From contig RQSC01000015.1 of the NCBI GenBank assembly GCA_013416795.1, forward strand, positions 399,255 through 463,254: a stretch of 64,000 nucleotides of DNA, given 5' to 3'. A model generated the notes under the pieces. The model saw only the letters and a list, made by a program, of their open reading frames with translations. It searched no databases and was not told where the DNA came from. The position numbers and the translations under genes are program-made. Shown here one piece after another: positions 4,758 through 63,535 of the stretch; position 1 is the first letter of the stretch; each line of letters opens with the position of its first letter. The DNA is from Prasinococcaceae sp. CCMP 1430 (lineage: Eukaryota; Plantae; Prasinodermophyta).

Positions 4758-6095
4758 TCAGTACGCCGACTGTTCGGCCTCGTCGCCAGCGAGAAACCAG
4801 AACGACAGCGCCAGCCTATCACGCGAGGTGGGGCGCACCTCGTGCTCCACATCGCGGCTGCGGAAGAGCACGAGCATATCCGACTGCGAGGCGTGTGCAC
4901 GCGCGCCCAGGGGGAGCGGACCATGACGGATGAGCGGCCGCGGCAGCGGGGTCGCGAGGCGCAGCGTCAGTTGCGCATCTGAGAGTCCTGCGCGGATTCA
5001 GCGCCGGCCGCTGCTAGTGCGCCGCCGAGCGCAGGAGAGACGTACCTTTGGTGAGAGCGTCACGGGCTCGGAGTCGGCGTCGCCGCTACCTGGCGGGTAC
5101 AACACGAGCTCGCCTCCGTCCGTCGCCGGGTCCCAGTCTGGGGGCGTTGCGTAATAGATTGCCGACACCAGTCGCGAGTCCGCGCGCGGCGATGCTGCGG
5201 TAGCGTCGAGGTGCCGCACGAACCCCTTTTTCCCGGCCGCGTACTGCGCGAGCATGGCCTTTGACATGTACTCGGACGGCTCGCGCAGAGGCAGCGAGGG
5301 CGCTCCCTGCCGCACCGCGCTGAGGACATGCGTGCGCAGCAGCTGTGTTGTCGCCGCGGCGAGCGTGCCGCCGGGGGCGACAACGCCACCGTCGCCCGCC
5401 TCAGCGGCCAGGGCGCCGGCAGGCGCGTCTGCCTCGTCGCGCTCATCACCGAGCAGCCACAGCACGACGTCGTCGCGCTGTGAGCGATCGGCCGCCCCTG
5501 TGCGTTCCATCTCGCCTGCACTGGCGTCCGCGCCTCGCCGCGCGTCGAAGTGCGACTCGAGCGCCGCGCGCACGGCAGCCGCCTGGGGCGCACCGAAAAG
5601 CGCCTCGACAGTGGCGTATCCCTTGCCGCTGGCTTCGAGCTCCTTCGCTGCGGCTGCGACGCGCTGCTCGAGGGATGGCGTGGCATGAAGTGTCCACGGC
5701 GAGGTCTGCCCCGGCTCTGCCGGCGCAGGAGGCGTGAGGTAGTCCGAGCGCACCCCCGCGGCGGCGGCGATGCGCGTGGGGAGGGAGTAGTGCACCATGC
5801 CCGCCTCCGCGCACGTGATGGCGAGCGCGACGAGCTCTCCGAGCGCTGGCAGCGCTTGCGCCTGTATGGCCCCCATTGCCTCCATCTCGAACGCGAAGCC
5901 AAGGTGAGGCGAGGCGTAGAAGCGCGAGTGCGATCGAGTCTCTGACGGGCGCGTGGCGAGCAGCCTCGAGATGGCGGGGGCGATGGACGCGCCCCTACGC
6001 GCACCAGCGCCCGGGCCTCCCGCCGCCACCACCGCCGCCGCCGCGCCCTCGAGCTCCGAGCGCAGGCCGCGCGCGCAGTGCTCGAGCAGCGCCAT
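4758..6095 (-). CDS. 2OG-Fe(II) oxygenase, EGLN/prolyl-4-hydroxylase-like; exons 5046..6095 and 4758..4883
   Basis: RDDVVLWL, FVRHLD (HxD), RLVSAIYY, DWDPATDGGELVLYP. A GT-AG intron at 4884..5045 joins to SDMLVLFRSRDVEHEVRPTSRDRLALSFW (distal His and 2OG-binding Arg). The start may lie further upstream. Confidence 0.8.
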
Positions 6096-51724: not shown

Positions 51725-52825
51725 TCAGTCGACGTGGGCACTGAGTGCTTTGATCGCCTGCGTGTTCTTTGCCCTCCGGGCGACATCGAGCGCGGTCCTG
51801 CCTTCTTTGTCGCGCAAGGACGCGTCCGCGCCCGCGTCGAGAAGTGCGTGAATGCAGTCGATGTGCTGGGGCGACGTCTCCTCCGCCGCGAGGTGCAGGG
51901 GCGTTCGGCCGTCGTCGTCCGGGTGATCTTTGTCTGCACCGGCCTCAAGAAGGAGCGCGACGCACTCTCTGTGGCCATTACGTGACGCCCAATGCAGAGG
52001 AGTAAAGCAGAGTTCGTCCTCGGGATCTATGTCCGCGCCCGCACCTATCAGAAGGTTGGCGAATTCGGCCTGGCCGTTTCCCGATGCGTAATGCAACGGA
52101 GTCATGCCCTCTCCGTCTTTCGTGCAAACCGTGGATGCGTCCGCATCGAGCAGCAGCTTGGCGCATGCGACTTGGCCGCCATTTCTCATCAATGCCCGAT
52201 GCAACGGAGTGTAGCCGTATTCGTCCGCGCGATCTGTGGCTGCGCCCTTATCGAGCAGCAGCTTGATGCATTCAGCAGAGCCACATTTCGATGCCCAATG
52301 CAACGGAGTCATGCCACATTCGTCCGCGCAATCCATGGCTGCTGCGTCCGCATCGAGCAGCAGCTTAACGCATGCGGCGTGGCCGCCCTGCGATGCATAA
52401 TACAACGGAGTTAGGCCGTCTTTGTCCGCGAGATCTGTGGCTGCGCCCGCCTCGAGCAGGACCTTGACGCATTCGGCTTGGCCACATTCCGCTGCAAGGG
52501 CCAACGCAGTGGCGTGGTATTCTTCATCCACCGTATCCTTGTCGATGCCCGCATCCAGGACGCGGCGGATAACTTCAGCCCGCCCTTTTATTGCCGCCCA
52601 CCTCAGGACCTCCTGCAAGTCTCCAAATAGAAGCAGCGCGTCGGCAAACAAGTCCACCTCCCTGCGCGCCGCGTCAACCTCCGCTCGTGCCGCCTGCACA
52701 GCGGCCGCGTTCACGCCGAGCGCCTGCGTGGCGACCAGCAGCGCCTGCCGCGTGCTCTCCGCCTTTGCGGCACCCGCGCCGCCGCTTTCGCCGCCGCCGC
52801 TGCCACCCGCGCGGCCGCCCGCCAT
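51725..52825 (-). CDS. Ankyrin-repeat protein 1
   Basis: About 8 repeats of G.TPLH.A...G...C..LLL.AGA. Confidence 0.88.
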   Translation of the reverse strand: MAGGRAGGSGGGESGGAGAAKAESTRQALLVATQALGVNAAAVQAARAEVDAARREVDLFADALLLFGDLQEVLRWAAIKGRAEVIRRVLDAGIDKDTVDEEYHATALALAAECGQAECVKVLLEAGAATDLADKDGLTPLYYASQGGHAACVKLLLDADAAAMDCADECGMTPLHWASKCGSAECIKLLLDKGAATDRADEYGYTPLHRALMRNGGQVACAKLLLDADASTVCTKDGEGMTPLHYASGNGQAEFANLLIGAGADIDPEDELCFTPLHWASRNGHRECVALLLEAGADKDHPDDDGRTPLHLAAEETSPQHIDCIHALLDAGADASLRDKEGRTALDVARRAKNTQAIKALSAHVD

Positions 52826-53573: not shown

Positions 53574-54959
53574 TTAGCATCGCGGGCGCGTGCTTGCTTT
53601 GGGCTCCTCGACGGGCTCGGCCCTCTGCGGGGCGCGGGGGGTGGCGTGCTGGCGCAGCAGCGCCGCGGCCTCCTTGTGTCTGGTTAGTTCAGCCATGTCG
53701 AGCGGCGTCCAGCCAAAGTTGTTGCGAGCGGATGCGTCGGCGCCCGCCTCGAGCAGCAGCCGCAGGCAACCAAGGTGTCCAACCTTAGCCGCACTATGCA
53801 GGGGTGTGTCGCCAGCCGTGTCGACCTTATCCTTGTCGGCGCCAGCCTCGAGCAGCAGCTGCAGGCAATCAAGGCTTCCAAAATAAGCCGCATGATGCAG
53901 GGGTGTGTGGCCACCCGTGCCTCCTTTGTTCTTGTCGGTGCCAGCCTCCAGCAGCAGCCGCACGCAATCGAGACGGTCCCGAAAAGCGGCGTAGTGCAAC
54001 GCAATTCTGCCAATCCAATCTGCCTTTTCCGTCTCGGCACCCGCCTCGAGCAGCAGCCGCAGGCAGTCTGGCGTATTTCCCTGAGCAGCTTGATGCAGGG
54101 GTGTGCGGCCCACATTGTCGGCCTTGTCCTTGTCGCCGCCGGCCTCGAGCAGCAGCTGCAGGCAATCAAGGCGCCCGTACTCAGCCGCTTGATGCAGCGG
54201 TGTGAGGCCCATCGTGTCTCCTTTGTGCTTGTCGGCGCCAGCCTCCAGCAGCAGCCGCAGGCAGTCGAGACAGCCCCGTGAGGCGGCGTAGTGCAAGGCA
54301 GCGCTGCCATCCAGATCTGCCTTGTCCGTCTCGGCACCCGCCTCGAGCAGCAACTGCAGGCAATCAACGTGCCCGCACTGAGCCGACACATGCAACGGTG
54401 TCATGCCATTGAAAGTGGCCTTGTCTATGTCGGCCCCGGCCTCGAGCAACAGCCGCAGGCAGTTCATTTGGCCGCCATTAATTGCGTCCACAAGTGCGCC
54501 CGCGTCCACATTCGCGCCTCGCGACAACGCGTGGCGGAGCGCATACTCCGCACCGCATCCCGCGGCACGTCGGAGCAATACGTTCACGTCCAAAGGTAGC
54601 ACAATCGATGTGCCAACCGGAGGCTTCCCGTCAGTGAGGAACAGGTCAAGCTCCTCCTTCAAAGCGTCGCGCTCCGCGCGCGCTTTTTGCACGGCGACGG
54701 CGCTGACGCCGCACACCTGCGTCACCAGAAGCAGCGCCCGGCGCGAGCGCTCCGCCGACGCAGAGCGGAGGCCTCCGGAACCACATTTGCTGCCACCCGT
54801 GGCACTGTCAGTGGCGTGGACAGCCGCGCCGGCATTGCAGCCGATCGCTCCGATGCATCCATTGCCGACCCATGTGATCTCCGCCCTCATCGCGTCACTG
54901 GCTGCACGCGCCTCGCGCACGGCCGCCTCGTTGACGCCGAGCGCCTGGATTGCCAGCAT
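53574..54959 (-). CDS. Ankyrin-repeat protein 2 (paralog of 51725..52825)
   Basis: About 9 repeats of TPLH.AA..G.LDCLQLLLEAGAD.DK. The N-terminal helix is homologous to paralog 1. The start is uncertain. Confidence 0.88.
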   Translation of the reverse strand: MLAIQALGVNEAAVREARAASDAMRAEITWVGNGCIGAIGCNAGAAVHATDSATGGSKCGSGGLRSASAERSRRALLLVTQVCGVSAVAVQKARAERDALKEELDLFLTDGKPPVGTSIVLPLDVNVLLRRAAGCGAEYALRHALSRGANVDAGALVDAINGGQMNCLRLLLEAGADIDKATFNGMTPLHVSAQCGHVDCLQLLLEAGAETDKADLDGSAALHYAASRGCLDCLRLLLEAGADKHKGDTMGLTPLHQAAEYGRLDCLQLLLEAGGDKDKADNVGRTPLHQAAQGNTPDCLRLLLEAGAETEKADWIGRIALHYAAFRDRLDCVRLLLEAGTDKNKGGTGGHTPLHHAAYFGSLDCLQLLLEAGADKDKVDTAGDTPLHSAAKVGHLGCLRLLLEAGADASARNNFGWTPLDMAELTRHKEAAALLRQHATPRAPQRAEPVEEPKASTRPRC

Positions 54960-56142
54960 CGCTCCATGCCGACGCGACCCACGCCTCGCCCGCGCCGCCG
55001 CTCCCGCCGCCGCCCGCGCCGCCGGCGTCCATCCCCGCGAGCGCGCTCGTCTCGTCGAGTGCACGCGCGTGAGCTCGTTCAGAGACGCGGCCACCTCGGG
55101 ACAGACGTGGGACTCGTGGGCACCCTCGGCTGCCTCTCGCGCGCTGTTTGGCGCCTCCGCCTGCGCGCGCACGCGCGCAAAAAAGCGCCGCTGTCGCATC
55201 GATCGCATCGCATTGCGCGGAAAAAAATACGCATGTCAAAACGCACGCAAAGTTGTGAAAGAAAGAAAGTGAGTGGGCGCACGAAAAAAGCCCCATCAAA
55301 ACGAACGAGTGTAACCCATCTTCTGAGCGGAAGTGGAACAGTCGATCGGTCGCGTGCGCCCACCCGATTCCATTCGATTTCCATTCGATTTCCGCTAAGT
55401 GCGTCGGCGGGCGCGCCCAAAAAAAATGTGTGGGTCAACCTCTTTCCGTACAGTGGATGTTCGTGTGTGTCGAGGGTGAGTGACGTGACTGCGATGCGAG
55501 GCCGCGGGGAGCCACACCGGGTGGGATGATACCAATGCACGAGGGCTGGAAGGGCTGCTGCTGTCGAGGCCGAACGCGGAAACTGACTTTCAATCAGATG
55601 GGACGGCGACGTCCGATCCGATCAATCCCTCGTTAAGGTGACAGCGGCCGTTTCCGTTTCAGTTTATGTTTCTGTTTCCGGTTTCGGCGCTCACAGGCGT
55701 GCGGGGGGAGGCCCCTGCGCGAGCAGCTGGGGCGTCATTTCGGGACCCCTGCGCCCGCCGTCGACGCCGCCTGCGCGTCCGCGGAGGGTTCGGGGTGGGC
55801 GTCCTTGACGTGGGCCCGCCGAGCGACGGCCGTCGGCGCACGCAATCAACAAAGAGGGCAAGATCGACATCGCCAAAAGGCAAGAACTTCACCAGGCCGC
55901 GGCGATGCTGCGTCACTATGGCGTCTCCGCCGCGCGGGGGCGTCGCTAGAGAGCTCGGACAGGAGAGGAGAGACATGCGTGTGCGCAGGCAAACGCGCGA
56001 GTATACGCACGTGCACACGTACGTGTCTTATAAGTCCTCATCAGTTTCGTCGCGCATTGCTTCTCACACGGCCATGCGATGGAGTGGCACGCGCCAACTG
56101 CCCTTTCAAGGCGAGACTGATACCCTCTCTGCGCGCGTAATC

Positions 56143-59100
56143 TCAGCTGGGGCTGAAGCCGTCGTCCCCACCGGCCTCCTTCGGCGAATAAGAGGGCCTT
56201 CGGAGAGAGAAGATGGGTGATTGGGCACACATAGAGTGCGAGTCAGCGCAGCTCATACACATGCGAGTTTGGACAAGAATGAATCGCTGTTGGCGCGTAG
56301 GTCCACACGCACAGGCTGGCAAAAACGAGCGGCATGAGCGCAACGTACGATGTTGGCGAGTACGAGGGACTCGTGGGCGAGTACGATGGACTGTGCAGAG
56401 AGCACAGCAGCGCGACCGCGGTCGCCAAGGGCGTGCCAGACAAGCCGCCAAGCGTCAGTTGTCAGTCGAGCAGAAAAATCAAAAATCGAAAACGAAACAT
56501 GGAAGAGGGTGGCACGAGCGCGCAGCGAGCTCGACGGGGCGCAGTCGCGCGCCACCAACCTTGTCGGCGAGTACGAGGGGCTCGTGGGTGAGTACGATGG
56601 ACTGTGCAGAGAGCACAGCAGCGCGACCGCGGTCGCCAAGGGCGTGCCAGACAAGCCGCCAAGCGTCAGTTGTCAGTCGAGCAGAAAAATCAAAAATCGA
56701 AAACGAAACATGGAAGAGGGTGGCACGAGCGCGCAGCGAGCTCGACGGGGCGCAGTCGCGCGCCACCAACCTCGTCGGCGAGTACGAGGGGCTCGTGGGC
56801 GAGTACGATGGACTGTGCAGAGAGCACAGCAGCGCGACCGCGGTCGCCAAGGGCGTGCCAGACAAGCCGCCAAGCGTCAGTTGTCAGTCGAGCAGAAAAA
56901 TCAAAAATCGAAAACGAAACATGGAAGAGGGTGGCACGAGCGCGCAGCGAGCTCGACGGGGCGCAGTCGCGCGCCACCAACCTCGTCGGCGAGTACGAGG
57001 GGCTCGTGGGCGAGTACGATGGACTGTGCAGAGAGCACAGCAGCGCGACCGCGGTCGCCAAGGGCGTGCCAGACAAGCCGCCAAGTGTCAGTTGTCAGTC
57101 GAGCAGAAAAATCAAAAATCGAAAACGAAACAAAAAATCAGCCTCGGAAGGGGGCGGCGCGAGCGCGCAGCGAGCTCGACGGGGCGCAGTCGCGCGCCAC
57201 CAACCTTGTCGGCGAGTACGAGGGGCTCGTGGGTGAGTACGATGGACTGTGCAGAGAGCACAGCAGCGCGACCGCGGTCGCCAAGGGCGTGCCAGACAAG
57301 CCGCCAAGTGTCAGTTGTCAGTCGAGCAGAAAAATCAAAAATCGAAAAAGAAACAAAAAATCAACGGAAGAGGGCGGCACGAGCGCGCAGCGAGCTCGAC
57401 GGGGCGCAGTCGCGCGCCACCAACCTCGTCGGCGAGTACGAGGGGCTCGTGGGCGAGTACGATGGACTGTGCAGAGAGCACAGCAGCGCGACCGCGGTCG
57501 CCAAGGGCGTGCCAGACAAGCCGCCAAGCGTCAGTTGTCAGTCGAGCAGAAAAATCAAAAATCGAAAACGAAACATGGAAGAGGGTGGCACGAGCGCGCA
57601 GCGAGCTCGACGGGGCGCAGTCGCGCGCCACCAACCTCGTCGGCGAGTACGAGGGGCTCGTGGGCGAGTACGATGGACTGTGCAGAGAGCACAGCAGCGC
57701 GACCGCGGTCGCCAAGGGCGTGCCAGACAAGCCGCCAAGCGTCAGTTGTCAGTCGAGCAGAAAAATCAAAAATCGAAAACGCACGGACGGGGGCGGCGCG
57801 AGCGCGCAGCGAGCTCGACGGGGCGCAGTCGCGCGCCACCAACCTCGTCGGCGAGTACGAGGGGCTCGTGGGTGAGTACGATGGACTGTGCAGAGAGCAC
57901 AGCAGCGCGACCGCGGTCGCCAAGGGCGTGCCAGACAAGCCGCCGAGCGTCAGTTGTCAGCTCAAAAACATTGTGAAACGAAACAACAAGAATCAATCGC
58001 GAACGAGAGCGCGCTCGACGGAGCGCAGGCGCGCGCCACCAACCTCGTCGGAGAGTACCCCGGGCTTCGCGGGGAGCAGAGCATGGCCGCGGAGGTCGCA
58101 CAGGGCGAGCCATACAAGGCAGCCGCGCCGCGCGTCACTTGTCAGCAACCAATGAACAATTGTGAAACGAAACAACAAGAATCAATCGCGAACGAGATCA
58201 GCGCGCTCGACGGAGCGCAGGCGCGCGCCACCAACCTCGTCGGAGAGTACCCCGGGCTTCGCGGGGAGCAGAGCATCGCCGCGGAGGTCGCACAGGACGA
58301 GCAATACAAGGCAGCCGCGCCGCGCGTCACTTGTCAGCCGAGCAGCACCAGAAAACAATTGTGAAACGAAACAACAAGAATCAATCGCGAACGAGGTCCG
58401 CGCACACAAGAGCAGCGCGCTCGACGGAGCGCAGGCGCGCGCCATCCACCTTGTTGGCGAAAACCCCGGCGATGTTGGGCTGAACCCCGGGCTCGGCCCC
58501 ACTCCGCCCCCACCCCCACCACCGCTCGCCCCGTACGGCGAGAACATGACGCTCCCCAGCCCGCCGCTCCTCAGCGGGCTGCTGCCGTGCGCCATGGGCG
58601 ACATGGCCGCCGAGAGCACGGGCGTCCTGCCACCCTCGTTGATCCCGCCCTCCTCTCCCACCGTCGCCAATTCGATCGCGTCCGCCAGCCCATCCTCCTC
58701 GAGCATGATGTCGAACGCCCCGGTGCCCAGCGGCCCGAGCTGGCCGAGCATCACCTGCGCGCTCACCCCCCTCAGGTCGTCCTTTTCACTAAACATGGCG
58801 GCCTGCATCAGGATATCGACGGTCTCCTCAAAGGAGCACCGCATGAGCGGCCCCGAGTTCAACCGATTGATCCCGTGCCTGCTGATCGACATCAGGTGGC
58901 CCCTGTACGTCATGACGTCGCACATGATCGCCAGGTGCCTGTAGTTCACGTAGCTCCCGTCGAAGGAGATCACGTTCCTCACCTCGTTCAGCAGCGCCCC
59001 GCGCACGGCCTCCACCCCCAGCACCTCCATCACCTCCACCAAATGGTTGCTTGTCGTCCTGCTCCCATCGACGTCCTCCTCGCTCATCACTCTCAGCAAG

Positions 59101-62100
59101 TTGACCCCCTCCGTGTCCAGCATCCACTCGTTGGCCGTCACGAACCCCGTGTCGGCACTCGGGTCGTGCCTGGTCCGCTTGGTCTCACGAATGAACACCT
59201 TCTTGATGTCCGGCACGCCCCGAAGCGCCATCGAGTTCAGCATGTTCATCTCGATCATCTTCAAAAACATGTCGTCCTCGCCGTCGGATCCTCCAGAAGA
59301 GCCCTTCTCCCCGTCCATGACGTCCTCCATGATCCTGAGCCGCATGACCAGCTTCTCGGCGTTGTCATCGCTGTAAATCACGTTCAGATCGTCCCCAAAC
59401 TCATCGGTGATCTTCCGCGCGACGTCCTCCATCCGCAAGCTCTTGTCCACCATCATCTCGCGGTTCAATTCGATCCTCAGCATCCACGGACTCGCCCTGT
59501 CCAAATCCACCTCCTCATCGGGCATCTCGTGGTACGCCTCCACGAACTCCTTGTCCTCCGCGATCACCGTTCCCCTCACGTCGGGGTCGTACCAGATCTC
59601 AGTCATGGCAGTCACGCTCTTCAGAGTGGTGTACTCCAGCCTGCACTGCACCGCCTTGGCCTCCTCCCTGTCCCTCCCACACCTGTCGCTCAAGTACACG
59701 CTCAAGCTGGGCGTCTTGACCGTCTTGGCAATGTTCATGATCTCCTTCAGCCTGGGCACGCCCAGCGTCACGTTCTTGGCCGACACGCCCGCGTAGTGGA
59801 AGGTGTTCAGCGTCATCTGCGTGGCGGGCTCCCCCACGCTCTGCGCGGCGATCGTGCCGATCATCTCGCCCGGGTGCACCAGGCTCTGCGCGAAGCGGCT
59901 CTCGATTTCACCCAGCACCCAGTCCAGCCCGGCCTCGTTCAGCCGATACCTGCTGCACACCTCTTTGGAACTCAGCGTCATGCGCACGAAGGCGCCGTAC
60001 AGCAACGTCGCGTTCCTCTGCGCCTCCTGGGACAGCCCGTCCTCCCCTGGAACCACGACCAATTTCTCGCAAAGCCGCGCGACTTTCTGCGCCACCTCCG
60101 AAGGACAGAGGTCGCTCTTCGGCTTCAGAAGCACCGAGTGCGATCCTTCGCTCTCGACGAACCTCTTCCGCGCGTTCCAGATCAGCCGGTCCAGGTTCAG
60201 CGGCAAGAACACCGAGTCATCGCCCGAGCTCAGCACCTCGCTGCGCAGCACCTGCAGGTCCTCGCGCAGCGCCCTCTCCTCCTCGCTCAGGATCGCAATC
60301 CTTGCGGCGTCCCCCCTCAGGCGCTCGAACACGTCCTTGTCCAAATACTCGCCCGCCTTGTCGACGTCAACGACGTACCGCCGATCGAAGGCAGCCTTGC
60401 CGCTCCTCAGGTTCTTGATCTTCTGCGACTCGATGTGCACGGCGTCCATCCCGTCCTCGCCGTAGAGGAACTGGATCACATCCCCGAGCGAGTTCCTCAC
60501 CGTGCCGTCGTACTGCGCGCTCAAGTCCTCCATGGCCTTCACCAGCCTTCTTTGAATATACCCCGTCTCGGCCGTCTTCACGGCCGTGTCGATGAGGCCC
60601 TCGCGGCCGCCCATGGCGTGGAAGAAGAACTCCTGCGGCGTGAGGCCGCGCAGGTAGCTGTTCTCGACGAAACCCCGACTCTCGGGACCGAAGTCGTCTT
60701 TCGTGAAGTGCGGCAGGGTCCGATCCACAAAGCCGAAGCGAATCCGTTTGCCCTCGACGTTCTGCTGCCCGACGCACGCCGTCACCTGCGAGATGTTGAT
60801 GAACGAGCCCTTGCTGCCCGCGTCGACCATCTGCTTCATGTTGTTGAGCTCCCTCAGCGAGCGCTGCGCGCGCTGGCCGGCGTCGTCGCGCGCCTTGTTG
60901 AGCACCTGGTTGACCTTGTTCTCGAAGCTCTCCTGCATCGTCCGCCCGGGCTGCGGCTCGAGCTGCCCGTTCTGCGCCTGCTGGATCAAGTCCTTCACCT
61001 GGCTCTTCGCGTCGGCGATCGTCTCGGTGATCTGCTTCATCGTCGCGTTGTCCGGGATGCCATCCCCGATGCCGATGGAGAAGCCGGTGTGCAGCAGCCA
61101 GTGGTTCACCAGCGTCTGCGTCTGGTTCAGGAAGCTGCGCGTGGCCGCGGGGCCGTGCTCCTGCCAGATGGTGTGCACGAGGCCGCCGGGCGCCGTCCCC
61201 ATCGACTTCTTGCACAGCATGCCGTGGAGCAGCTTGCCGCGCTCGATGCGTACCTGCGTGTCCCCGGCCGAGAAGTCCTTGATCTCGCCCTCCCGGTGCC
61301 CCGCGGCGGTGCGAGTCAGGTTGACGTCCGGCAGGAAGAGGTTGAACACCTGCTTGCCGGTCCACAGCGGCCTGGGCTTCAGGATGGCCGGCACGGGCAT
61401 CTTGCCCTGGAACTCCTCGGCCCACAGCATGATGTTCATCATGAGGTCCTTCTCAATGAAGCAATCCCTCTTGGTGATGTTGCGGCACCCCAGCAGGGTG
61501 TCCTGCACGATACCGATGACCGGCTTGTTGCCCTGCGGGCTGACGATGCAGCGCGGCACCATCATCATCTCGCTCACCTCGGCGCGCGTCTCGAACGTCT
61601 GCGGCACGTGCAGGTTCATCTCGTCGCCGTCGAAGTCGGCGTTGTACGGCGAGGTGACCGACAGGTTGAGGCGGAACGTGGAGTAGGGGAAGATGCGCAC
61701 CTTGTGCCCCATGATGGACATCTTGTGCAGCGACGGCTGGCGGTTGAAGAGCACCACGTCGCCGTTCTGCAGGTGGCGCTCCACCTTGAAGCCCACCTCG
61801 AGCGCCCGCTCGCTCGGGCCGAGGGCGTAGCGCAGGTCGATGCGCGAGCCGTCGGGGCGGATGATGTAGTTGGCGCCGCGCTCGCCGGGCGGCGGGTTGG
61901 GCCCGTTCTCCACGAGCTGCTGCAGCTTGTCGACGTTGTACGGCGTGACGCACTCCGGCACGGTGAGCGTCTGGGAGATGCTCAGGGGCACGCCGACCTC
62001 GTCGATCGAGATGTTGGGGTCGGCGGTGATGACGGTGCGCGCGGAGAAGTCCACGCGCTTGCCCATCAGGTTGCCGCGGATGCGGCCCTCCTTGCCCTTG

Positions 62101-63535
62101 AGGCGCTGGCAGATCGACTTGATGGGCCGGCCCGAGCGCTGCGTGCTCACCGGCACGCCGGGGATGGTGTTGTCCATGTACGTGATCACGTGGTACTGCA
62201 CGAGCTTGGTGTACTCGGCCAGGATGTGCGCGGGGGCGCCGAGCTCGTCCTGCTGCTTCAGCTTGGCGTTCGCGCGCACGATCTCGCTCAGCTTGTGCGT
62301 GCAGTCGTCCTCCGAGCGCCCGCCGTCCATGGCGACGCTGGGGCGCACCGCCGGCGGCGGCACGGGCATGGCGGTGATCACCATCCAGTCGGGGCGCGCG
62401 AACTCGGGGTCGAGGCCGAGCACGCGCACGTCCTCGTCCGAGATGCGGCGCAGGATCTCGTGCACGCGCTCCGCGCTGAGCTCCATCTTGCTCTCCTCGG
62501 GCGCGATCACGTCGGAGTCCGCGCCTTTCTTGGTCTTGAACTCGGCCATGAAGGTGATGCCGTCCTGCAGGGTGATCTTCGGCTGCAGCGCGTTGGTCGC
62601 CTCCGACACGTCGATGTTCTGGCTAGCCTGCGCGATGCGCGTGAGGCGCTGGAAGCCGTTCTTGATCCTGCGCGCGGCGACCATGCGGCGGTCGGGCTCG
62701 TTGCCGTCCGCGTCCTTCTCCGCACGCAGGCGCAGCTTGGACGTGAAGAAGCACACGCTGCGCAGGACCTTGAGCACGATCTTCACGAAGTGCGGGTGGA
62801 ACACCGGCTTGGCGAGGTCGATGTGGCCGAAGTAGCCCGGGCACTCGTTGATGTCGTTGCCGTCCGTCAGGCAGTTGAGCGCCTTGTCGACGGTGCCCAG
62901 GCGCAGGTCATTGACGCCGCCCGCCTTGGGCTTGCCCTTGTCCATCGAGTCGCCGGAGGTGATCTGCGCGACCGAATACCTCCGCTGCGGGGCGCGCGGC
63001 GCGAGCGGACGGCGAGCGCGCGTGCGCGGGGGCGGATGGGCGCACAGGGGTGCGCGCGGGTCGCAGGGCGCCATGCGAGCGCATCATCATTAGCGACGAC
63101 GGGATGCCGATGAGCTCGGCCCAGCTGCCTGCGTCTGGCGTCCGCGCGGGCGCGGGGCGCGCTCCCACAGCCTGGCCGCGACGCGATGCAACACGGCATG
63201 CGCGCCGCGGCAGCGGAGGCTAGGCTGGACGGGCGCGCTCGCGCGCTCGCGCTCGCGGCGCCCACTCTCGCGCGAGCGCATCGCGACGACGCGGGCACTG
63301 CGACGAGGCGCGTGTGCTGCGGCTCCCGCTGTGCGCGGCGCGGCGCCCCCGCCTCGCTCCGCTAGGGTTGCACCCATGCGCAGGCGCAAGCGAGGCCTCG
63401 CGACGCCACCCGCCGCCACGCCCTGTCGCGCGCACTCACCACCTCCTCGGGCGACAGGATGCCGAACTGCACCGCCTGCACGCGGCGCAGCTCGCAGCTC
63501 GAGTAGTCGAACTTGTCATGGACGGACGACGCCAT
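56143..63535 (-). CDS. RPB1: RNA polymerase II largest subunit; exons 63440..63535, 58450..62984, 58236..58256, 58044..58064, 57844..57885, 57636..57677, 57425..57466, 57205..57246, 56982..57023, 56771..56812, 56560..56601, 56349..56390, 56143..56197
   Basis: VQFGILSPEE, GKEGRIRGNLMGKRVDFSARTVIT, catalytic NADFDGD, bridge helix TAVKTAETGYIQRRL, trigger loop MTLNTFHYAG. Splicing at GT-AG sites gives FSPTSPG x2, YSPTSPG, YSPTSPS x17, YSPKEAGGDDGFSPS*. Confidence 0.95.
56349..58449. repeat. Tandem exon+intron array (units about 190-225 bp) encoding the CTD
   Basis: Eight 42-nt and two 21-nt heptad-coding cores, each followed by near-identical intron sequence. Confidence 0.95.

Follow-up and report, generated by a model that had tools for sequence, protein, structure and literature searches.

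RESULTS

The RPB1 gene of Prasinoderma coloniale and its C-terminal domain

The window analyzed here is a 64,000-nucleotide (nt) stretch of contig RQSC01000015.1 (GenBank assembly GCA_013416795.1, positions 399,255 to 463,254 of the forward strand). It carries, on its minus strand, the RPB1 gene of RNA polymerase II (Pol II) of Prasinoderma coloniale CCMP1413, the single RPB1 gene seen here. A first-pass annotation, made from the letters alone, had recognized RPB1 and proposed that its C-terminal domain (CTD) of heptad repeats is assembled from a tandem array of heptad-sized micro-exons. The gene assignment holds: a 1630-amino-acid (aa) open reading frame (ORF) at 63074-58182 carries Pfam Rpb1 domains 1 to 7 in order, each above its curated cut-off (E values of 6e-39 to 1e-103).

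The main exon is 4.5 kb long; its last base is 58450, and it closes on ...SPGFSPT and the boundary AG/GT. Read without splicing, the ORF passes from ...SPGFSPTSPGFSPT into junk (RWMARACAPSS...) and stops within intron 2. We located micro-exons downstream of the main exon by a pattern search bounded by AG and GT. They comprise two 21-nt and eight 42-nt exons, closed by a terminal exon whose coding part, stop included, is 55 nt (Table 1). All 11 introns between them, 151 to 193 nt long, are GT-AG introns of phase 2 that fall within a Ser codon (AG/Y or TC/G). The array exons are thus whole multiples of the heptad (21 or 42 nt), and intron phase is constant. The end of the main exon, the sizes and counts of the exons and the properties of the introns were all as first described.

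When the 11 GT-AG pairs are removed conceptually, the result is an in-frame coding sequence of 5058 nt. Its product reads, in order, 2 SPGFSPT, 2 SPGYSPT, 16 SPSYSPT, SPSYSPKEAGGDDGFSPS and stop. It contains 17 perfect YSPTSPS, the number originally given; by F/Y start there are 21 heptads, two of these in the main exon, a count that depends on the register chosen. At the DNA level, Tandem Repeats Finder reports a period of 211 nt (7.5 copies, 95% match) and another of 192 nt (2.4 copies, 90% match). The CTD introns, at 55 to 66% GC with T-rich cores, differ in look from the GC-rich 5′ intron of the same gene (intron 0), which is without CTGAC and has as its nearest CTRAY match a CTAAT at −109.

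The published gene model

The published protein for this gene (P0121 in our set; EukProt EP00793 / PRCOL_00006783-RA, P. coloniale) is 100% identical to the window from aa 5 to 1557 by tblastn. The model joins the 5′ exon at 63535-63440 to the main exon across the 455-nt intron. Its 3′ end lies 40 nt inside intron 1, at 58410, and the protein finishes with '...SPGFSPTRWMARACAPSSALL'. Since the model ends inside intron 1, the RPB1 of the reference proteome is without a CTD, the truncation by gene callers that the first-pass annotation had anticipated.

Relationships among the array units

Introns 1 to 10 align as one paralogous family. Two subtypes can be told apart, only about 70% alike: G-type introns (1 and 2), which go with the SPGYSPT exons, and S-type introns (4 to 10). 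Intron 3 is a chimera of the two. Exons and introns of the S-type part vary together. The codon TCA is common to exons e4, e7 and e10, and ACA to e7 and e10; intron 4 is like intron 7, and intron 5 with the exon that follows it (i5+e6) equals intron 8 with its exon (i8+e9) base for base. The S-type units thus form a three-unit higher-order repeat of about 640 nt, a mark of unequal recombination. The paralogy of introns 1 to 10, the three-unit repeat, the two identical units and the chimeric intron together argue for tandem duplication of exon-plus-intron units, as the first-pass annotation had suggested. The last 42-nt exon ends in TC/GTACGT and is followed by the unrelated intron 11; the border of the duplicated block lies there.

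Per nucleotide, the exons are not more conserved than the introns (4 to 6 variable sites per 42 nt, against 8 per 166 ungapped intron columns). The array introns are still about 95% identical, which suggests that the duplications are recent and probably continuing. We searched for copies of all 11 introns by blastn and found none elsewhere in the 64-kb window of this 25-Mb genome; the matches outside the array were of 24 to 44 nt only and near the cut-off (E of 0.008 to 0.009). Because no intron copy lies elsewhere in the window, tandem duplication is much likelier than repeated insertion of a mobile element.

Evidence for splicing

We infer splicing of the 11 array introns from the genomic sequence. 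The proposed splicing, and it alone, restores the frame, the heptad register and a C-terminal YSPKE motif, which also ends the intron-free CTD of a more distant relative (L001, described below). A CTGAC motif starts at −75 and −68 in introns 3 to 10, at −81 in introns 1 and 2 and at −49 in intron 11. This puts the branch A of introns 3 to 10 at about −65, in agreement with the distance first noted for the repeated introns. Across the window and its relatives, 19 of 21 introns (about 9 of them independent) have CTGAC 36 to 81 nt before the acceptor, where about 0.1 would be expected in each. No AG occurs between the motif and the acceptor in introns 3 to 11, and introns 1 and 2 have one AG, 2 nt past the motif; the joint probability of the AG-free zone across independent introns is about 1e-5.

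The exons behave as coding sequence. Wherever the 42-nt exons differ at a single site, the change is synonymous and in third position (4 of 4; P of about 0.005 to 0.012 by chance), whereas indels in the introns have lengths not divisible by three, which bears out the contrast drawn in the first-pass annotation. The ten exons have no frameshift, stop or nonsynonymous change, and their splice signals are intact. Intron RNA was not predicted to be more stable than shuffled sequence (z of −1.26). What argues most strongly for splicing comes from wild relatives, in which unrelated introns and exons of other sizes would give the same protein order.

Wild relatives with other layouts

Eleven metagenome proteins cluster with the P. 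coloniale RPB1, and we compared twelve contigs that encode them, mostly Tara Oceans scaffolds. In the 4.5-kb RPB1 body, these differ from the window by 0.6 to 1.3% (3 to 4% at four-fold sites), and intron 0 is about 96% identical. From the second SPGFSPT to about 5 nt before the terminal exon, nothing aligns.

Two layouts are found among these contigs. In type A (L004, L007 and L009 to L014, from eight samples), the main exon extends to ...SPGYSPTSPG and is followed by a 6-nt exon (GTACTC), a 21-nt exon, a long heptad exon, a 9-nt exon and the terminal exon. The long exon is an intron-free run of 21-nt repeats; L011, which is gap-free, has ten heptads (210 nt), and L004 and L009, both with N gaps, have at least 15. 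In type B (L002, L003, L005 and L006), the main exon is extended as in type A, and a tandem array of 21-nt exons with introns of about 150 nt comes next, in the register YSPTSPS and with the intron in a Gly/Ser codon. The array is followed by a 6-nt exon, a 9-nt exon and the terminal exon, whose peptide is identical to that of the window. An N gap hides the copy number of type B, and L002, L003 and L006 break off exactly there. Spliced in this way, type A yields 2 SPGFSPT, 2 SPGYSPT, n SPSYSPT and SPSYSPK(D/E)..., the order seen in the window. Type B yields the window order as well, except for the SPSYSPT stretch that lies within the N gap. The second exon-plus-intron array of type B agrees with the view that the unit of expansion is exon plus intron.

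The predicted 6-nt exons (GTACTC or CTACTC) and 9-nt exons lie at 5228-5233 and 5885-5893 of L011 and at 5888-5893 and 6070-6078 of L005. Each precedes GTACG(T/C), and they supply exactly the YS and PTS needed for the heptad register.

Among the three layouts, blastn found no intron homology, and shuffle-calibrated local alignment found none beyond the expected pairs. A weak hint, on which we do not rely, links an S-type intron of the window to the last type B intron (z of 6.3, about 63% over 100 nt around ACAACTGACGC). At heptad positions 2, 5 and 7, the Ser codons belong to different classes in the three arrays, which points to different founder heptads; the arrays would then not be one another's descendants. 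The RPB1 body of the window is closest to two type A contigs, and the layouts do not track the gene-body tree, so recombination or old polymorphism is involved.

Past the CTD cassette, at 55500-56142 of the window, identity to L004, L005, L007, L009 and L014 falls to 81 to 92% in patches, and type A shows no alignment to the 307 nt that directly follow the stop; the RPB1 body is about 99% identical to the wild contigs and intron 0 96%. This drop suggests either a haplotype block that has diverged or a breakpoint of recombination at the cassette.

The CTD of L001, a more distant species, is wholly intron-free. L001 shares 77% aa identity with the window in the searched region and 85% in the gene body, and 41% of four-fold sites differ. 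Its CTD (L001:10300-10655) and the proteins P0002 and P0132 to P0136 have 7 or 8 SPSYSPT, depending on the contig, and a 42-nt periodicity in codon usage. Duplication of diheptad units thus takes place without introns, too. In all, near-identical genes show three layouts, to which the intron-free CTD of L001 can be added. A further contig, L008, was the sole match of the 22-nt exon-intron junction pattern; it is GC-rich, bacterial-looking and unrelated, and we regard it as a chance match.

Neighboring sequence and feature coordinates

Elsewhere in the window, tandem repeats with a period of 99 to 102 nt (33 to 34 aa) occur at 51987-52483 and 53736-54463. The homologous downstream region of the wild contigs contains an ORF with much Ala, Gly, Asp and Leu, ankyrin-like on visual inspection. 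Given this ORF and the 33- to 34-aa period, the repeats probably belong to an ankyrin-repeat gene.

Table 1. Exons and introns of the P. coloniale RPB1 gene in window coordinates; exon boundaries within the CTD are those of the proposed splicing
Feature	Position	Strand	Basis
RPB1 exon 1, coding part (MASSVHDKF...PEEV)	63440..63535	-	tblastn of P0121: aa 5-32 at 100%
Intron 0, 455 nt, GTGAGT...CAG, 78% GC	62985..63439	-	gap between P0121 tblastn segments; ~96% identical to wild contigs
RPB1 main exon: Rpb1 domains 1-7, linker, two degenerate heptads (SPGFSPT x2), end AG/GT	58450..62984	-	
Intron 1, 193 nt, GT-AG, phase 2, G-type	58257..58449	-	
21-nt exon, (S)PGYSPT(S)	58236..58256	-	
Intron 2, 171 nt, G-type	58065..58235	-	
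Second 21-nt exon, identical to first	58044..58064	-	
Intron 3, 158 nt, chimeric: 5′ half G-type, 3′ half S-type	57886..58043	-	intron alignment
42-nt diheptad exon 1/8 (e4), variant TCA/ACG	57844..57885	-	
Intron 4, 166 nt, S-type	57678..57843	-	
42-nt diheptad exon 2/8	57636..57677	-	
Intron 5, 169 nt, S-type; with next exon identical to intron 8 and its exon	57467..57635	-	
42-nt diheptad exon 3/8	57425..57466	-	
Intron 6, 178 nt, S-type, insertion in T-rich part	57247..57424	-	
42-nt diheptad exon 4/8, variant TCA/ACA	57205..57246	-	
Intron 7, 181 nt, S-type, like intron 4	57024..57204	-	
42-nt diheptad exon 5/8	56982..57023	-	
Intron 8, 169 nt, S-type	56813..56981	-	
42-nt diheptad exon 6/8	56771..56812	-	
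Intron 9, 169 nt, S-type	56602..56770	-	
42-nt diheptad exon 7/8, variant TCA/ACA	56560..56601	-	
Intron 10, 169 nt, S-type	56391..56559	-	
42-nt diheptad exon 8/8, end TC/GTACGT not AG/GTTGGT	56349..56390	-	
Intron 11, 151 nt, GTACGT...AAG, unrelated to introns 1-10, CTGAC at −49	56198..56348	-	
Terminal exon coding part, (S)PSYSPKEAGGDDGFSPS + stop; 3′ UTR (untranslated region) runs on below 56143	56143..56197	-	peptide identical in wild contig L005

DISCUSSION

The array is best explained as the real structure of this RPB1 gene, with a CTD encoded by eleven small exons, which are joined by removal of eleven short U2-type GT-AG introns, ten of them copied along with the repeat units; we put the probability of this reading at roughly 0.85. 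Several observations count against it. The branch motif of the array introns is unusually far from the acceptor (65 to 80 nt). JGI metagenome and metatranscriptome contigs gave no match to an exact 29-nt exon-exon junction pattern. The protein collection held no near-identical transcript-derived fragment (110 to 875 aa) when searched with the last 200 and the last 500 aa of the main exon, the best matches being 62% and 67% identical. Among metagenome contigs, a window-type array was not seen, and each of the 11 wild members of the cluster belongs to one of the other two types. The array copy number, finally, is known from one assembly only.

We considered whether each intron could instead be an introner, inserted separately at the same site of each diheptad with no duplication of the unit. 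Introners are known from marine picoalgae, and the array introns are short (150 to 190 nt), mutually similar and young; the nonhomologous introns in the CTD cassettes of near-identical genes also suggest recent gains. However, separate insertion does not account for synonymous exon variants that covary with the introns in a three-unit pattern, for a unit duplicated exactly or for an intron 3 that is a recombinant of two subtypes. Nor does the 64-kb window have any other copy of an array intron, and our literature search found no link of introners to Prasinoderma. The AG common to exon end and intron end is uninformative on introner target-site duplications. Taken together, this makes independent insertion of every intron quite improbable, although an introner could have been the source of the very first copy.

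An assembly artefact, in the array itself or in its copy number, is a natural concern in a region whose units are about 95% identical, as repeats are error-prone. In the relatives, scaffolds from short reads end or have N gaps precisely at the arrays, and the lack of a window-type array among the metagenome contigs would fit this explanation as well. But the genome was assembled from PacBio Sequel reads to chromosome level (22 chromosomes) and polished with Illumina reads (PMC7455551), and the array is 2.3 kb, well below the length of a long read. In addition, the units differ by ordered substitutions and indels, and intron subtypes that are only about 70% alike are not products of collapse or expansion errors. 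Intron 1 has the same sequence in the published gene model, which reads into it. We therefore consider an artefact very unlikely.

The array might also be a decaying relic, with Rpb1 ending after the main exon or another copy being used. The published annotation, which is without a CTD, would agree with this. Against it stand ten exons free of frameshifts, stops and nonsynonymous changes, with intact splice signals and AG-free zones, and the same protein pattern kept in three layouts. To our knowledge, the CTD is essential in every tested organism with canonical heptads, and the relic explanation is highly unlikely. Two long plus-strand ORFs over the array (56350-58155, 601 aa, and 56213-57976, 587 aa) have weak summed Pfam matches to a coiled-coil model, but no stretch is above the Pfam threshold, stop codons are rare in DNA of 62 to 66% GC and the 211-nt unit, not being a multiple of three, makes the frame drift from unit to unit, so we judge these ORFs to be spurious antisense of the heptad codons and the chance of a real repeat-protein gene there to be negligible.

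How could tandem duplication of exon-plus-intron units have come about? An intron would first have come to sit inside one heptad. Unequal recombination or replication slippage would then have expanded the repeat and carried along the intron, of which the ten array introns are copies. The unit of expansion would have been a 21-nt exon with its intron at first, then a 42-nt exon with its intron and, in the latest events, blocks of three units. The arrays of different alleles or sibling lineages would have regrown from different surviving units, with or without an intron, and the CTD locus would be a fast-turnover cassette that keeps its protein pattern. In yeast, CTD arrays are unstable, and their length is held by selection (PMC4882425, PMC7341143). 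With such instability and selection on length, expansion would be expected to copy the intron together with the exon. The introns are short, so recognition by intron definition is probable, which may be why exons of 6 to 42 nt are tolerated. The array exons are without exception symmetric, with identical splice sites, and skipping any of them would yield an in-frame, shorter CTD.

The closest parallel is found in spider silk genes. Nephila Flag and Argiope MaSp2 are iterated exon-intron arrays with near-identical introns (PMC1885213). In both cases, a repetitive protein is made from tandem exon-intron units, unequal crossing-over is taken to spread an intron once it is within the repeat, and homogeneity is no lower among introns than among exons (PMC1885213). 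Silk exons, however, are hundreds to thousands of nucleotides long and encode a secreted structural protein, whereas each array exon here covers one or two heptads (21 or 42 nt) of a transcriptional regulatory domain that is both essential and universally conserved. Fibrillar collagen genes have exons of 54 bp (and 45, 99 or 108 bp). They share with the array exon lengths that are whole multiples of the peptide repeat, in the same phase, a classic sign of exon-plus-intron amplification; their introns, unlike the roughly 95% identical ones here, have long diverged and vary greatly in length. The micro-exon genes (MEGs) of Schistosoma and neuronal micro-exons have very short symmetric exons, too (6 to 42 nt), whose skipping keeps the frame. 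Such exons are neither copied in tandem nor separated by identical introns, and they serve variable secreted proteins or regulated inserts, not a housekeeping domain.

Ordinary RPB1 CTDs, such as those of yeast, Arabidopsis and L001, have the same heptad consensus, a similar repeat number and an unstable DNA array. The difference is that their unit of expansion is a 21-nt (or 42-nt) coding repeat inside one exon; here the unit includes the intron, so that gaining two heptads takes 211 nt of DNA. The first-pass annotation had gone too far in treating the CTD as lying in continuous exon sequence elsewhere. As we measured it, the Arabidopsis RPB1 has aa 740 to 1759, with most of the CTD, in one exon, and its distal CTD is cut by about two introns; mammalian CTDs span several exons. 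Introns in a CTD as such are therefore not new; what is new is a periodic, heptad-sized, tandemly duplicated array. Our literature search, outside which Yang & Stiller 2014 and Liu et al. 2010 fell, found no earlier report of a Pol II CTD made from heptad-sized tandem exons or of near-identical genes that differ in CTD layout; two other CTD-evolution papers within its reach do not treat introns in the CTD.

P. coloniale is the one sequenced representative of the phylum Prasinodermophyta, and its annotated RPB1 is without a CTD; comparisons of CTD evolution that draw on the reference proteome would mis-score this deep green lineage. The locus puts gene finders, and the recognition of exons of 6 to 42 nt, to a stringent test. 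With three layouts, introns that cannot be aligned and gene bodies that differ by about 1%, it also offers a rare natural setting in which to follow how introns were very recently gained, lost and propagated in a gene that is essential, and cultured strains and public long-read and RNA-seq data (PMC7455551, PMC11884799) exist for Prasinoderma.

Expansion of a CTD by exon-plus-intron units seemingly happened twice independently in close relatives. Heptad pairs have been proposed as the functional unit of the CTD, and the recent diheptad unit of this array matches that. More speculatively, the CTD segment of the P. coloniale complex may be a hypervariable cassette that repeatedly collapses and regrows from one founder unit, with introns hitchhiking and with exon skipping perhaps giving Pol II with CTDs of varied length. 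We hold this idea only tentatively. Such collapse and regrowth from founder units would leave genes about 1% different with nonhomologous introns, different Ser codon classes and the same protein. If true, CTD length would be tuned by splicing, that is, by machinery that itself depends on the CTD.

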